Virus record (IMG/VR): IMGVR_UViG_3300043570_001980
Coordinates: 124,001-188,000 of that record
DNA: 64,000 nt
Direction: 5' to 3' (one strand)
How positions within the stretch are numbered: the first letter of the stretch is position 1; the number at the start of each line of letters is the position of its first letter. The translations under genes and the position numbers were made by a program. Below, piece after piece: positions 1,275-12,440 of the stretch. The notes under the pieces were generated by a model. It had not been told where the DNA came from, made no database searches, and saw only the letters and a list, made by a program, of their open reading frames with translations.

Positions 1275-1303
1275 TAGACCAGAATTGACAGATCTAGTAC
1301 AAT
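1275..1303 (+). promoter_or_regulatory. Sigma70-type promoter
   Basis: TAGACC-17 nt-TACAAT. Confidence 0.55.
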
Positions 1304-1339
1304 AGAAACATGAAGGAAGCAATTCCGGGCAACAACAGA

Positions 1340-1358
1340 GTGTTGTAAAAATACAACA
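1340..1358. promoter_or_regulatory. Palindromic operator-like site TGTTGTA-N4-TACAACA
   Basis: Inverted repeat just upstream of a -35 box; recurs at 2656 and, degenerate, at 16701. Confidence 0.6.
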
Positions 1359-1367
1359 AACAAGTAG

Positions 1368-1396
1368 TTGACAAAAATTGCAAAGTATCATATAAT
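1368..1396 (+). promoter_or_regulatory. Consensus sigma70 promoter for tRNA block 1
   Basis: TTGACA-17 nt-TATAAT, perfect consensus. Confidence 0.9.
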
Positions 1397-2474: not shown

Positions 2475-2550
2475 GGTCTTAAAGTGTTCATGGACGCACG
2501 ACGGCTTGTCACGCCGTAAGAGTGGGGATCGTTACCCCCTAAGACCGCCA
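2475..2550 (+). tRNA. tRNA-Asp(GTC)
   Basis: Cloverleaf, TT-GTC-AC loop, atypical T-loop ATCGTTA, CCA. Confidence 0.9.
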
Positions 2551-2572: not shown

Positions 2573-2647
2573 CGCGGGGTACGTCAGTGGTAGACCGCCA
2601 GGCTCATAACCTGGAAGCCGGAGGTTCGAGTCCTTCCCCCGCAACCA
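2573..2647 (+). tRNA. Initiator tRNA-fMet(CAT)
   Basis: C1-A72 mismatch, CGCGGGG 5' end, CT-CAT-AA loop, CCA. Confidence 0.92.
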
Positions 2648-2655
2648 ACACAGGA

Positions 2656-2675
2656 GTGTTGTATAAATACAACAC
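2656..2675. promoter_or_regulatory. Palindromic operator-like site GTGTTGTA-TAAA-TACAACAC
   Basis: Perfect 8-bp inverted repeat upstream of the promoter at 2695. Confidence 0.6.
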
Positions 2676-2694
2676 AAAATTTTTACCTTAGAGG

Positions 2695-2723
2695 TTGACT
2701 CTAAGACATAAATAAAGTACAAT
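2695..2723 (+). promoter_or_regulatory. Sigma70 promoter for leader 2 / tRNA block 2
   Basis: TTGACT-17 nt-TACAAT; the -35 box sits inside the inverted repeat CTTAGAG/CTCTAAG. Confidence 0.8.
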
Positions 2724-2733
2724 AGAAACTAAG

Positions 2734-2865
2734 ATGAACAAGCATTTCACATTATCGTTGAAACCCATTATGCACCAGACAGCATCTGCCTGGTCACGCG
2801 GTTTTAATTTTAACTGTGGGATTACAATTCCAGGTACGCAGGGGTCCGTAGGAGACAAGATGTAA
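2734..2865 (+). CDS. Putative attenuator leader peptide 2 (43 aa, MNKHFTLSLKPIMHQTASAWSRGFNFNCGITIPGTQGSVGDKM)
   Basis: ATG near the predicted start site; GGGGTCC (2841-2847) is complementary to terminator arm GGACCCC (2889-2895); the stop codon lies inside the alternative hairpin. Confidence 0.6.
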   Translation: MNKHFTLSLKPIMHQTASAWSRGFNFNCGITIPGTQGSVGDKM

Positions 2866-2888
2866 TAAAAATACATCAAATTCTAAAA

Positions 2889-2924
2889 GGACCCCAGGAC
2901 TAAAAACCCTGGGGTTTTGTTTTT
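2889..2924 (+). terminator. Intrinsic terminator (attenuator 2)
   Basis: GGACCCCAGG-loop-CCTGGGGTTT followed by a T tract. Confidence 0.85.
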
Positions 2925-2933
2925 AAGGAACAA

Positions 2934-3119
2934 ATGATTAGAGAAGAAAGTAAAACTGAACATAAGTGTGTTTACACAGAAATTGATCAAAGAGCCAACG
3001 AAGGACTAGGGTACGCACTCACTCCCGAGATGACAAAAAAATTGATTGAAGGTAAATTCACAAGAATGCAACTGCTAACAGGCAATCGAAATAGAGTGAT
3101 TGAAACTAGCAAAGCATAA
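2934..3119 (+). CDS. Hypothetical protein (61 aa)
   Basis: AAGGA Shine-Dalgarno before ATG; first gene after attenuator 2. Confidence 0.6.
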   Translation: MIREESKTEHKCVYTEIDQRANEGLGYALTPEMTKKLIEGKFTRMQLLTGNRNRVIETSKA

Positions 3120-3293
3120 AGTGTGCATAGGCAACGCGAGCCTGACCTGCACTTAAAACATGGGCAAATGGGCGGCCTGTAGGATGAAGCTTCTTTTGTG
3201 AAGTGAAAAATTACAGCGTATTAAAGCATTCTTTAAGAACAGGCAGCCTAAGTATTTTAGAGTGCTTTAATACATACATTCCTCGGAGTGTGT
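3119..3293 (+). ncRNA. Structured intergenic RNA F including a 15-bp processing-type stem
   Basis: GTGCA/TGCAC, AGGC/GCCT and CTGTA/TACAG helices; 3218-3232 pairs with 3259-3273. Confidence 0.4.
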
Positions 3294-3305
3294 TAACTAT
3301 TTTAT

Positions 3306-3381
3306 TCCTTGATAGCTCAGTTGGTAGAGCACTTGACTGTTAATCAAGTTGTCCCTGGTTCGAGCCCAGGTCGAGGAGCCA
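3306..3381 (+). tRNA. tRNA-Asn(GTT)
   Basis: Cloverleaf, CT-GTT-AA, CCA. Confidence 0.95.
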
Positions 3382-3387
3382 GATATA

Positions 3388-3463
<76 letters not shown>

Positions 3464-3468
3464 TTTAT

Positions 3469-3545
3469 ACCACCTTAGCTCATTTGGATAGAGCACCAGG
3501 CTACGAACTTGGGGGTAGGGCGTTCAACTCGCTCAGGTGGTACCA
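3469..3545 (+). tRNA. tRNA-Arg(ACG)
   Basis: Cloverleaf, CT-ACG-AA, CCA. Confidence 0.92.
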
Positions 3546-3551
3546 GTTTTT

Positions 3552-3626
3552 GGGGGATTGGTATAGTTGGGAACACAGTAGCTTTGCAAGCTTCAGTCAG
3601 CGGTTCGACCCCGCTATCCTCCACCA
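3552..3626 (+). tRNA. tRNA-Ala(TGC)
   Basis: G3-U70 pair, TT-TGC-AA, CCA. Confidence 0.93.
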
Positions 3627-3679
3627 ACAAATTTTTAAGGAGAGTCCAAATGGACAGTGATAAGAGTGGTAAGATTTGT

Positions 3680-3755
3680 GGGACGTTAGCTCAGTTGGTA
3701 GAGCAGTAGACTTTTAATCTATTGGTCATTGGTTCGAATCCAATACGTCCTACCA
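3680..3755 (+). tRNA. tRNA-Lys(TTT)
   Basis: Cloverleaf, CT-TTT-AA, CCA. Confidence 0.95.
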
Positions 3756-3872
3756 TATAAAAGCATTCTTGGCGTAAGTCAAAGCGGGAGAAGAAGCTGA
3801 GTATCTGCAGATGCAAAAGTTTCAGCAACTAGATTGCCTCCTAGGCCTGCTGTTGAGAGTGCCTCTATATGG
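3753..3872 (+). ncRNA. Unidentified structured RNA G closed by a ~22-bp stem
   Basis: CCATATAAAAGCATTCTTGGCG pairs with TGTTGAGAGTGCCTCTATATGG; internal GCTGA/TCAGC and CTAG/CTAG helices. Confidence 0.5.
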
Positions 3873-3946
3873 TAATATAGCATAGTGGCTAATGCAGTTG
3901 CTTCATACGCAACCTATCGTTGGTTCGAGTCCAACTATTACCACCA
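3871..3946 (+). tRNA. tRNA-Met(CAT), elongator (Ile2 not excluded)
   Basis: Fully paired acceptor stem, TT-CAT-AC, CCA. Confidence 0.85.
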
Positions 3947-3954
3947 GGCTTTGT

Positions 3955-4031
3955 TGGAGATTCGCCAAGTTGGTCAAGGCATCGGATTTTGATTCCGACA
4001 CGCATAGGTTCGAATCCTATATCTCCTGCCA
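3955..4031 (+). tRNA. tRNA-Gln(TTG)
   Basis: Cloverleaf, unpaired 1-72, TT-TTG-AT, CCA. Confidence 0.93.
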
Positions 4032-4037
4032 GATTTT

Positions 4038-4112
4038 AGCCGTGTAGCTCAGAGGAAGAGCATTGTCTTGATAAGGCAAGGGTCGACATTTCGAAACTGT
4101 CCATGGCTACCA
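4038..4112 (+). tRNA. tRNA-Ile(GAT)
   Basis: Cloverleaf, TT-GAT-AA, atypical T-stem, CCA. Confidence 0.88.
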
Positions 4113-4130
4113 ATATAAGTAAATTACAAT

Positions 4131-4204
4131 GCGGGGTTCGTATAGTGGTAATACCTGAGCCTTCCAAGCTCATGCGGAGAGTTCGATTCTCTTACCCCGC
4201 TCCA
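4131..4204 (+). tRNA. tRNA-Gly(TCC)
   Basis: Cloverleaf, CT-TCC-AA, U73, CCA. Confidence 0.95.
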
Positions 4205-4210
4205 GGTTTA

Positions 4211-4285
4211 GGGTGATTAGCTCAGCGGTAGAGTCGCTGCCTTACACGCAGTTTGTCGGGAGTTCGATCCTCTCATCACCCACCA
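4211..4285 (+). tRNA. tRNA-Val(TAC)
   Basis: Cloverleaf, CT-TAC-AC, CCA. Confidence 0.95.
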
Positions 4286-4291
4286 GTTATT

Positions 4292-4368
4292 CGGAGTGTA
4301 GCACAGCCTGGTAGTGCGCCTGGTTTGGGACCAGGAGGTCGTAGGTTCGAATCCTACTATTCCGACCA
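4292..4368 (+). tRNA. tRNA-Pro(TGG)
   Basis: Cloverleaf, TT-TGG-GA, CCA. Confidence 0.95.
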
Positions 4369-4373
4369 ATTAT

Positions 4374-4451
4374 GCAACGGTGGCAGAGTGGTCAAATGCA
4401 ACGGATTGCAAATCCGTAAAGTCGTGAGTTCAAATCTCACCCGTTGTTCCA
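4374..4451 (+). tRNA. tRNA-Cys(GCA)
   Basis: Cloverleaf, TT-GCA-AA, U73, CCA. Confidence 0.93.
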
Positions 4452-4455
4452 ATTT

Positions 4456-4529
4456 GTATCCATAGTGTAATGGCAGCATTGCGGTCTCCAAAACCGTCAG
4501 TCTAGGTTCAAGTCCTAGTGGGTACGCCA
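4456..4529 (+). tRNA. tRNA-Trp(CCA)
   Basis: Cloverleaf, CT-CCA-AA, CCA end. Confidence 0.93.
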
Positions 4530-4551: not shown

Positions 4552-4989
4552 ATGATAAAAGAAACACAAACAAGAACAATAGTAAAAGCAGTTATATACA
4601 GATTTTTCTCAGTGGTAGCTATCATGTTGTTATCACTGCTATTCGGCGCTAGCATGGCATCGGCTGGCATAGTCGGACTAATTGTAATTGTGGTAGGTAC
4701 AGCAATTTATTACGTACATGACAGGTTGTGGTTGCTTACTGGATGGGCAAGAAACGATTCAGGGGTTGACGATATCAAACGTAGTGTAATTAAAACCATT
4801 ATCTATCGTGCAATCACCATGACGGTTTCTTACTTGATTGCAATATTCATTATTAAAAGCAGTGGGTCCAACGCTGTGCTATTTGCAATAGCACAGGCAT
4901 TGACAAATATGACTTTTTTCTTTATTGTTGAGAGAGTATTTAATTTTATTGAATGGGGAAAAATTAAACCTGAATCTCAGGTAAATTAA
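4552..4989 (+). CDS. Membrane protein with two DUF2061-like repeats
   Basis: Tandem RTIVKAVIYR...YYVHDRLW and RSVIKTIIYR...FFIVERVFNFIEWG units. Confidence 0.75.
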   Translation: MIKETQTRTIVKAVIYRFFSVVAIMLLSLLFGASMASAGIVGLIVIVVGTAIYYVHDRLWLLTGWARNDSGVDDIKRSVIKTIIYRAITMTVSYLIAIFIIKSSGSNAVLFAIAQALTNMTFFFIVERVFNFIEWGKIKPESQVN

Positions 4990-6360: not shown

Positions 6361-7140
6361 ATGAAGAGACTTTTTGTAATGCTTGTATTACTTGTTAGCA
6401 TACCCTCTTATGCATTTCCTAGCAATTCAAGCATTCTGGTATTGGATGTAAATTCCAACCACCCACGATATGTACATAATGGCGAGCAAGTTCGTTCTAT
6501 TGCCAGCATTACTAAATTAATGACTGCAATGGTAACCCTTGACTACGATAAAGATCTAAGTAGAAAACTTTTGCTCAGTAATCGTGTCACGAGCAGTTTA
6601 CCTAAACAATATTATACCAGACACGAGCTGTTAAATGCAATGTTGGTTCGCAGTGATAATGCCGCTGCCGAAACCATTGCTGAAGATTATCCTGGCGGTA
6701 GACACGCATTTGTTAAACAAATGAACCTACATGCCAAAATGTGGGATATGAACAATACTGCATTTATTGATCCAACTGGCCTGGGCGTGTTCAATGTCAG
6801 CACAGTATATGATGTGGCCAACATGATACAAACAGCATCCAGTTATTGGTTTATCAGAGAAACATCAGTTAAAAAGAATGTTGCCATTGCTACCCTAGCC
6901 AAAAAGAAAACACGAACTGTAAATTTAAACAATACCAATCAATCACTGTTATTTAAATTTGACAATATTGTAATCAGCAAAACTGGTCTTACCAGTGCCG
7001 CCGGTTGGTGTATGAGTTTGTTTGTAACGGAAAAAGACAAAGACTACATAATTGTAGTACTAGGAAGTAAAAACAAAAACGAAAGAACAGCTACAGTAAA
7101 GGACATCATGTATAGCCATGTACTTGATCCCAACTCGTAA
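6361..7140 (+). CDS. D-alanyl-D-alanine endo/carboxypeptidase (peptidase S11, PbpG/DacA-like)
   Basis: Signal peptide; SxxK (ASITK), SxN (SDN) and KTG motifs. Confidence 0.9.
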   Translation: MKRLFVMLVLLVSIPSYAFPSNSSILVLDVNSNHPRYVHNGEQVRSIASITKLMTAMVTLDYDKDLSRKLLLSNRVTSSLPKQYYTRHELLNAMLVRSDNAAAETIAEDYPGGRHAFVKQMNLHAKMWDMNNTAFIDPTGLGVFNVSTVYDVANMIQTASSYWFIRETSVKKNVAIATLAKKKTRTVNLNNTNQSLLFKFDNIVISKTGLTSAAGWCMSLFVTEKDKDYIIVVLGSKNKNERTATVKDIMYSHVLDPNS

Positions 7141-11518: not shown

Positions 11519-11956
11519 ATGAAAGAAAAATTTATTCAAGCCTACATGGATGTTGCTAAAACATTTGCAGAACTCAGCCATGCTCGTAGATTACATGTGG
11601 GTGCTATTGTGGTCAAGGATGATAGAATTATCAGTATTGGCTACAATGGCATGCCTGCTGGTTGGGATAACAACTGTGAAGATGAGATTTGGGATAAAAC
11701 TGGTGATTATGAATTGAAAACAAAGCCAGAAGTACTTCACGCAGAAACCAACGCCATTGCAAAATTAGCCAAGAGCACAGAAAGCGGAGACGGTGCTGAT
11801 TTGTTTGTTACTCATGCTCCGTGCATTGAATGTGCCAAACTGATTTATCAATCCGGCATACGCAGAGTATTTTATGGCAAAGCATACCGAGATGATTCAG
11901 GCATAAAGTTTTTAGAGAAATCAGGAGTAACAGTCAATAAAACTGTTGACGTATAA
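11519..11956 (+). CDS. dCMP deaminase
   Basis: GYNG, HAE and PCxxC zinc motifs. Confidence 0.92.
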   Translation: MKEKFIQAYMDVAKTFAELSHARRLHVGAIVVKDDRIISIGYNGMPAGWDNNCEDEIWDKTGDYELKTKPEVLHAETNAIAKLAKSTESGDGADLFVTHAPCIECAKLIYQSGIRRVFYGKAYRDDSGIKFLEKSGVTVNKTVDV

Positions 11957-11964
11957 TCAATAAG

Positions 11965-12036
11965 TAAGAGTTATTGCTGTATGAAGCAAAGAGAAAAGTG
12001 TTCTGGACGGGGGTGCGAATCCCCCCAGGTCCACCA
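11965..12036 (+). ncRNA. ssrA: Two-piece (permuted) tmRNA, acceptor piece (5' end approximate)
   Basis: GGAC-GGGGG-TGCGAAT-CCCCC-CAGGTCC-A-CCA; pairs with downstream GGGCCTG giving G3-U70. Confidence 0.92.
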
Positions 12037-12047
12037 AAAGGATTTTT

Positions 12048-12173
12048 ATGTTTGAGAATTGGCATTGGGTTTATATGTGGGGCATCTTAGTTGTAGTCAA
12101 CTATATGTTTTGGATTATAAAAAGTCTTTTTGATGGGCCTGACCTAGATTCGACAGGGCAACAAGTAAATTAG
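12048..12173 (+). CDS. Putative 41-aa membrane micropeptide starting in the tmRNA intervening segment
   Basis: AAGGA SD 6 nt before ATG; MFENWHWVYMWGILVVVNYMFWIIKSLFDGPDLDSTGQQVN. Confidence 0.45.
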   Translation: MFENWHWVYMWGILVVVNYMFWIIKSLFDGPDLDSTGQQVN

Positions 12174-12316
12174 TGGACAGCTCGGCAATGCAGAAGCCGT
12201 AGGACAGGGGTAACCCGGTTGTAGAAGCAAAAAAAGTAAACGCAAACGACTCACAGTTCGCATTGGCAGCTTGATAAAAGCCGTCTAGGGTAAGACATAC
12301 CTCGTAACAGAAACTC
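12135..12316 (+). ncRNA. ssrA: Two-piece (permuted) tmRNA, coding piece; tag ANDSQFALAA
   Basis: GGGCCTGACCTAGATTCGAC 5' end; resume codon GCA at 12242; tandem stops TGA TAA at 12272-12277. Confidence 0.93.
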
Positions 12317-12317
12317 A

Positions 12318-12344
12318 GAGACCCGCTTCGGCGGGTTTTCTTTT
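12318..12344 (+). terminator. Intrinsic terminator after tmRNA
   Basis: GAGACCCGC-TTCG-GCGGGTTTT plus T tract. Confidence 0.9.
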
Positions 12345-12440
12345 GACCAAAATACCCCAAATTTTAATTGATGTTACCACAAACTCTAATACATAGTAGC
12401 GAATGATTTAAAGCTCATTCTCTTTTTAAGGAAAACAAAA

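Follow-up and report, generated by a model that had tools for sequence, protein, structure and literature searches.

A conserved leader RNA with competing antiterminator and terminator hairpins before a tRNA gene block of an uncultured freshwater jumbo phage: a candidate ribosome-dependent attenuator

How does a phage that carries its own tRNA genes control their transcription? This question is raised by a short locus in the IMG/VR virus record IMGVR_UViG_3300043570_001980, where a promoter, a short open reading frame and two competing hairpins precede a tRNA block. The analysed window comprises 64,000 bp (bases 124,001–188,000) of a single 341,990-bp record with 40.7% G+C, rated 95% complete; all coordinates below are those of the window. 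Near-identical and related contigs originate from lake and other freshwater metagenomes. The first 9 kb of the window hold 25 tRNA genes, and a permuted tmRNA of betaproteobacterial type located further on hints at the host group. RNA polymerase beta, sigma-70 region 2, Q-type antiterminator (PF06530 and PF03589), CsrA and Hfq families were not detected in the genome. Host polymerase acting on sigma-70-type promoters is therefore a reasonable assumption, although it is an inference only.

The first question is whether the elements are present. A sequence-only reading of the locus had described a long three-segment hairpin containing the stop codon of a leader ORF, mutually exclusive with a terminator whose T-tract runs directly into the Shine–Dalgarno sequence (SD) of a 61-aa gene. 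All of these elements were found, and this observation is confirmed with small corrections of coordinates (Table 1). The hairpin and the terminator share five bases, ACCCC (2891–2895), so they cannot both form. The structure is more than would be expected by chance: the folding z-score is −3.9 for positions 2725–2935 and −3.2 for positions 2836–2930. A further helix, which the sequence-only reading had missed, pairs positions 2826–2834 with positions 2908–2916, that is, a second CCAGG upstream of the hairpin with the 3′ arm of the terminator, and it is part of the minimum-energy fold.

Table 1. Features of the leader and its surroundings in window coordinates. Codes beginning with L denote related lineages; the close clade comprises the lineages close to the window.
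Position	Strand	Feature	Details
1275–1396		Paralogous promoter region	Shares the 13-nt −10 block GTACAATAGAAAC (at 1297) with the leader promoter P2; a 12-codon frame starts 7 nt after its −10 and stops in the loop of hairpin 1341–1358
1341–1358		Hairpin of the UGUA/UACA family	One of three copies
1368–1396		Perfect-consensus promoter	Follows the 12-codon frame
2475–2550		tRNA-Asp called by ARAGORN	No match to the Rfam tRNA model at E<=1; may be an aberrant or tRNA-like gene
2573–2647		tRNA-Met, initiator type	By eye, C1/A72 mismatch and acceptor stem of a bacterial initiator tRNA; in L007 its anticodon stem has the three G-C pairs as well
2656–2675	+	Hairpin GUGUUGUA-UAAA-UACAACAC followed by an A/T-rich stretch	Just after the tRNA-Met; may act as a weak terminator or as an UP-like element upstream of the promoter; one of three copies of the hairpin family; kept in L035
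2685–2706	+	Hairpin or palindrome with the −35 TTGAC in its loop	Compensating stem changes in L007, L017 and L035, with G.U pairs allowed on the + strand
2695–2723	+	Sigma-70-type promoter P2, TTGACT-17-TACAAT	10/12 match; −35 and −10 kept and spacer variable in all nine lineages, including L035 and L036
2734–2865	+	43-codon leader ORF	ATG 10 nt after the −10; stop UAA 2863–2865
2744–2822	+	Long 5′ hairpin inside the ORF (about 30 pairs)	One pair changed on both sides and four on one side; 99% of cells in the lower stem paired; a hairpin of like shape but different sequence in L035
2826–2834	+	Alternative partner AAUUCCAGG of the terminator 3′ arm (2908–2916)	Adds about −7.6 kcal/mol to the read-through fold; invariant in the close clade, absent at this place in L035; in L036 an upstream CCAGGG plays the same part
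2841–2895	+	Three-segment antiterminator hairpin	Outer helix GGGGUCC 2841–2847 with GGACCCC 2889–2895; middle helix UAGGA 2849–2853 with UUCUA 2881–2885; inner helix GAUGUA 2859–2864 with UACAUC 2872–2877, loop 2865–2871
2850–2865	+	AGGAG-N5-AUG-UAA, canonical SD with a start-stop	Buried in the middle and inner helices
2891–2924	+	Intrinsic terminator, −14.9 kcal/mol	8-bp stem with 6 G-C pairs, ACCCCAGG 2891–2898 with CCUGGGGU 2908–2915; 9-nt loop; tract UUUUGUUUUU, U-tract 2915–2924
2899–2907		Terminator loop	A[CU]UAAA[AC]AC kept in all three clades, although terminator loops are usually free to vary
2925–3119	+	SD AAGGAA (2925–2930) and 61-aa ORF of unknown function (ATG 2934)	Replaceable slot
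3117–3305	+	Conserved structured spacer of several hairpins	Compensatory changes in the 15-bp hairpin
3306–4529	+	Thirteen tRNA genes (Asn to Trp)	Block that read-through would reach
4900		Promoter-like site, 10/12	Precedes three more tRNA genes
11923–12365		Permuted (two-piece) tmRNA	Betaproteobacterial type, tag ANDSQFALAA

The hairpin and terminator states are nearly equal in energy. The long hairpin was calculated at −22.7 kcal/mol, the terminator with the two inner helices kept at −21.6 kcal/mol, and the hairpin plus the additional helix at −30.3 kcal/mol. At equilibrium, the naked full leader has the outer helix at a probability of 0.91 and the terminator at 0.09. Folding of growing chains puts the outer helix at 1.0 as soon as position 2895 is out, before the 3′ arm of the terminator emerges, and keeps the terminator at 0.04 or less. 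However, the estimated refolding barriers are low (3.9 kcal/mol from hairpin to terminator and 6.5 kcal/mol to the additional helix), so partial termination without any ribosome is possible.

The second question is whether the two structures are conserved. The first round of searches gave six lineages that are 89–94% identical to the window over the leader. On these alone the case was thin: one pair was changed on both sides in the 5′ hairpin and one in the outer helix (G2841A together with C2895U), most other substitutions fell in loops or kept pairs, and second codon positions of the ORF changed as often as third ones. Examination of the cluster members of the small downstream ORFs brought more contigs, two of which, L035 and L036, carry strongly diverged homologues of the whole unit, scoring about 40 bits against about 240 for the close clade. 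In total, nine distinct lineages in three clades were aligned. Two pattern scans of IMG/VR and two of GTDB genomes added no lineage, and the upstream 320-aa gene led only to contigs that end before the leader or have another neighbourhood. A search of a phage collection by DNA and by protein returned only tRNA matches, and an nhmmer search of the 342-kb genome revealed no paralogues of the leader.

Both competing helices are under selection. In the nine lineages, the outer antiterminator helix is paired in 98.4% of cells, with two pairs changed on both sides (G-C to A-U and C-G to U-A), and none of 500 shuffles reaches the observed score. The terminator is paired in 100% of cells, with two pairs changed on both sides in L035 (2–3 of 500 shuffles reach the observed score) and three pair types at the position of C2895. 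This shared nucleotide keeps a partner in both structures in every lineage. A homologous multi-segment hairpin recurs with different sequence in L035 and L036.

The third question concerns the ORF. In all three clades, an ATG lies 9–10 nt after TACAAT although the bases between differ, and the frame stays open for 43, 45 or 50 codons, while the other two frames hold 2–6 stops. From a fixed ATG, dinucleotide shuffles stay open that far in 15%, 11% and 6% of trials, respectively; the three clades are related, so their open frames are not independent events and these figures cannot simply be multiplied. L036 has a 1-nt indel after the conserved TGGTC block, reads the homologous bases in another frame and is still open. 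In contrast, the peptide is not conserved: that of the window is 33% identical to that of L035 and has no alignment to that of L036. The stop codon is in the apical part of the hairpin in all clades (in L036 it is the triloop itself) and lies 48–54 nt before the U-tract.

There are also weak points. No SD precedes AUG 2734, whereas about 39% of long ORFs in this genome show a four-base SD at the first ATG, against 7% at random sites. The transcript start is inferred from the −10 only; with the usual distance of 7–8 nt, the 5′ UTR would be about 3 nt in all three clades, which fits leaderless-type initiation and is close to, but not the same as, a 5′-terminal AUG. Precedents exist for leaderless short ORFs that act as attenuators (10.1101/834739) and for 70S initiation at an AUG at or near the 5′ end (PMC9031893). 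The 5′ hairpin begins 10 nt after the AUG and could hinder initiation. The frame was not listed by any gene caller, and a search among 5.8 billion proteins with the 43-aa sequence returned nothing, not even itself. The second-position changes in the close clade fit a frame whose product does not matter, but they equally fit non-coding RNA. No run of a regulatory codon occurs; the peptides hold 18–20 different amino acids. Those of L007 and L036 contain all 20 (P about 0.01 and 0.04), while those of the window and L035 contain 18, which is not significant. This is no more than a hint that the frame samples many codons.

To model the effect of a ribosome, the leader was folded with about 31 nt masked around an A site moved along the frame. 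In the window, the terminator probability stays at 0.21 or less for codons 1–31 and becomes 1.0 from codon 34 to the stop. The same flip, from at most 0.14 to 1.0 with the mask over the last ~10 codons, occurs in nine of ten sequences tested, which include one near-duplicate. In L036, the mask at the stop codon itself lets the outer helix close around the ribosome, which is sterically implausible and is an artefact of the method. The exception is L035, whose terminator can extend to 13 pairs (−27.3 kcal/mol) and beats its hairpin (−18.5 kcal/mol) in all states, so that termination is predicted whatever the ribosome does. These calculations show that anything occupying positions 2826–2847 turns the terminator on; they do not show that a ribosome does so.

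What would such a switch gate? That an internal promoter might supply the tRNA block had been named beforehand as a possible refutation; no sigma-70-like promoter of 10/12 or better was found between 2925 and the first tRNA gene at 3306. An 11-mer scan for shared promoter-like motifs in 2640–2935 and 3117–3306 revealed only the −10 block at 1297 and a coding-region copy outside the window. In L036, the unit directly follows a protein gene and its terminator and is followed by a 57-aa ORF, the structured spacer and a tRNA-like sequence; the promoter of the leader is therefore the only visible one for what lies downstream. The sequence-only reading proposed that up to 20 tRNA genes could be gated, but this is an upper bound. 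Thirteen genes are contiguous and are followed by a DUF2061 gene, three more come after the possible internal promoter at 4900, and the next four lie beyond a gene on the other strand. The array is mosaic: in L019 (positions 1555–2262 and 2762 of its own sequence), about 700 nt are inserted between tRNA-Gln and tRNA-Ile, and the DUF2061 gene is missing.

The suggestion that the 61-aa protein may be part of the response was rejected. This protein has only two other clusters among 5.8 billion proteins, at 97% and 75% identity, all at this same place, and Pfam and ESM Atlas searches gave no meaningful match. In L007 (positions 6393–6566 of its own sequence), L019, L035, L036 and L037, it is replaced by a 57-aa ORF with no detectable similarity, and the boundaries of the swap are at the SD and at the stop codon. 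It is a replaceable slot between conserved RNA elements, not a conserved partner of the switch.

The start-stop site AGGAG-N5-AUG-UAA resembles the start-stop minimal ORFs described earlier (10.1101/520783) and at first looked attractive as the ribosome entry site. It is one of only two such sites in the genome, against about nine expected. However, it is buried in two helices and confined to the clade of the window; only the purine-rich GGAG motif before the stop is shared by all clades, while the AUG-UAA is not kept in L035 or L036. The inner helix of the antiterminator (2859–2877) belongs to a hairpin family (a stem ending in UGUA, an A/U loop of 4–7 nt, then UACA) that occurs exactly three times in the 342-kb genome, all within 1.6 kb; shuffles give about 0.25, and each copy contains TAA. 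The paralogous promoter region at 1275–1396 is 94–98% identical in a lineage whose upstream gene is only ~73% identical. The G.U pairs in the palindrome around the −35 point to selection on the + strand RNA, that is, to read-in from the upstream tRNA block.

Other spacers of the tRNA cluster are also conserved, strongly structured RNAs. For the spacers at 1403–1693, 2029–2470, 3117–3305 and 3756–3870, there is no Rfam match at E<=1, and their z-scores are −4.1, −4.3 and −3.0; the region 2038–2400 closes into a ~360-nt fold. Pieces of them occur in metatranscriptome contigs at 90–100% identity. A search of the first 14 kb against Rfam 15 likewise found nothing in the leader, with no match to a riboswitch, T-box or leader RNA family at E<=1 within 2650–3300. 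The metatranscriptome contigs, which are dominated by tRNA look-alikes, give no depth over 2670–2836 and a depth of 9–54 over 2837–3003. Possibly, this reflects a stable 3′ fragment comprising the hairpin and the terminator; however, contigs show presence only and cannot reveal transcript ends.

Taken together, a ribosome-dependent transcription attenuator in front of a phage tRNA block is the best available explanation, which we consider about as likely as not. In this view, host RNA polymerase starts at P2 and the RNA begins about 3 nt before AUG 2734, so a ribosome could load at the 5′ end as on a leaderless mRNA. If no ribosome is there, or it is held up earlier in the frame, the three-segment hairpin would form first and lock up ACCCC, the additional helix would take the other arm of the terminator, and the polymerase would read on into the small ORF, the structured spacer and the 13–16 tRNA genes. 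If the ribosome reaches the last ~10 codons or the stop while the polymerase is about 50–90 nt ahead, it would cover the 5′ strands; GGACCCC would be freed, the terminator would form, and the transcript would end at about 2924. Thus, good translation would give a short leader RNA and poor translation more phage tRNA. The analysis establishes the structures, their mutual exclusion, the covariation on both helices, the open frame conserved without a conserved peptide and the conserved distance from the stop to the U-tract, whereas translation of the frame, the control of termination by the position of the ribosome, the direction of the switch and its physiological logic are inferred. Accordingly, the proposal of the sequence-only reading that a terminating ribosome melts the antiterminator, so that fast translation gives termination, is partly supported: the switch and the frame are conserved, but translation is unproven and one clade does not fit the energetic model.

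The strongest of the rival readings, though an unlikely one, is that the leader works without translation, as a structured leader or a small RNA whose competing hairpin only tunes the terminator to a fixed, partial efficiency, the open frame being a by-product. The near-equal energies and low barriers, the hairpin-rich spacers elsewhere in the cluster, the missing SD, the absence of a gene call, the substitutions of the close clade that fall in loops or keep pairs, and the TAA built into the hairpin family are consistent with this. A non-translated small RNA was at first preferred because of the missing SD and the second-position changes; this was revised when L035 and L036 showed the frame kept without the peptide, even after a frame change in L036, with a conserved distance from the stop to the U-tract. 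The lack of depth over the 5′ half in RNA runs that do hold the neighbouring spacers also speaks against it, but only weakly. Somewhat more doubtful is a real switch flipped by a trans-acting phage or host protein, or an RNA, that binds the 5′ strands or stabilises the hairpin, as L4 does at the S10 leader, or an antiterminator acting on a short terminated leader such as lambda PR′-tR′. A 37-nt block covering the loops of the hairpin is invariant in the close clade, the terminator loop sequence is kept in all clades, and a promoter, a ~200-nt RNA and a terminator placed before genes resemble the 6S leader of lambda. However, no Q-type antiterminator, sigma factor, CsrA or Hfq family hit was found in the 95%-complete genome, the hairpin loops differ completely in L035 and L036, and the conserved frame remains unexplained. 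It is improbable that the hairpin is an RNase III-type processing or stability site of the tRNA precursor next to an ordinary terminator: it is an irregular ~55-nt hairpin with internal loops between genes, as at T7 early sites, and several long perfect hairpins lie elsewhere in the cluster, but this model does not need the overlap with the terminator, whose shared nucleotide co-varies with both partners, and does not explain the frame. That the frame, although open in all lineages, encodes a functional small protein whose gene is simply ended by the terminator is very unlikely, given the lack of peptide conservation, the H/L/P and F/Y/C replacements within the close clade, and the absence of a homologue among 5.8 billion proteins and of a Pfam hit.

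When comparing the leader with described systems, the attenuators of enterobacterial amino-acid operons (trp, his, leu, thr, ilv, pheA) and of pheST can be noted first. They also have a promoter-proximal short ORF followed by an antiterminator that shares bases with an intrinsic terminator just before the regulated genes, and a ribosome that reaches the end of the frame favours the terminator. Here, however, there is no SD and no run of regulatory codons, the frame is long with its stop inside the antiterminator, a second helix captures the 3′ arm of the terminator, and the regulated genes are tRNA genes and a small ORF of a phage. In the leaderless short-ORF attenuators of mycobacteria (10.1101/834739), a short ORF without an SD at the very 5′ end of the transcript acts as a sensor for downstream genes; those ORFs carry cysteine-codon runs and sense one amino acid, while here the AUG is about 3 nt from the predicted 5′ end, the codons are mixed and the read-out is an intrinsic terminator. 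The 44-codon pyrBI leader of E. coli is likewise a long frame whose ribosome acts through its distance from the polymerase, but there the ribosome runs into the terminator and blocks it, whereas here the frame ends about 50 nt before the U-tract and the ribosome is predicted to promote termination. In the lambda PR′-tR′ 6S leader with Q antitermination, a constitutive promoter also gives a ~200-nt terminated RNA ahead of a gene block; no Q-like protein was found here, and a conserved RNA competitor of the terminator is present. The T4 tRNA cluster with its small stable RNAs (rnaC, rnaD) is also a phage tRNA array interspersed with structured non-tRNA RNAs, and no attenuator is known to have been described there.

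Phage tRNA genes are now known to rescue infection when host defences destroy tRNAs (PMC11555353, PMC11464382), while hardly anything is known about how phages time or dose their tRNA arrays. A tentative and more far-reaching possibility is that the leader is a general sensor of translation capacity, a near-leaderless test frame that samples almost every amino acid (all 20 in the L007 and L036 versions). A ribosome held up on it would let a jumbo phage switch on its own near-complete tRNA set when host tRNAs are scarce, ill-matched or cut by anticodon-nuclease defences, making a feedback loop between translation and the tRNA supply of the phage. A conserved, compact (about 230 nt) attenuator that reads translation itself and gates 13–16 tRNA genes would be a first example of feedback control of a viral tRNA set. 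It would also extend leader-ORF attenuation to a frame without an SD and without regulatory codon runs, and to a sensor that is general rather than specific for one amino acid.
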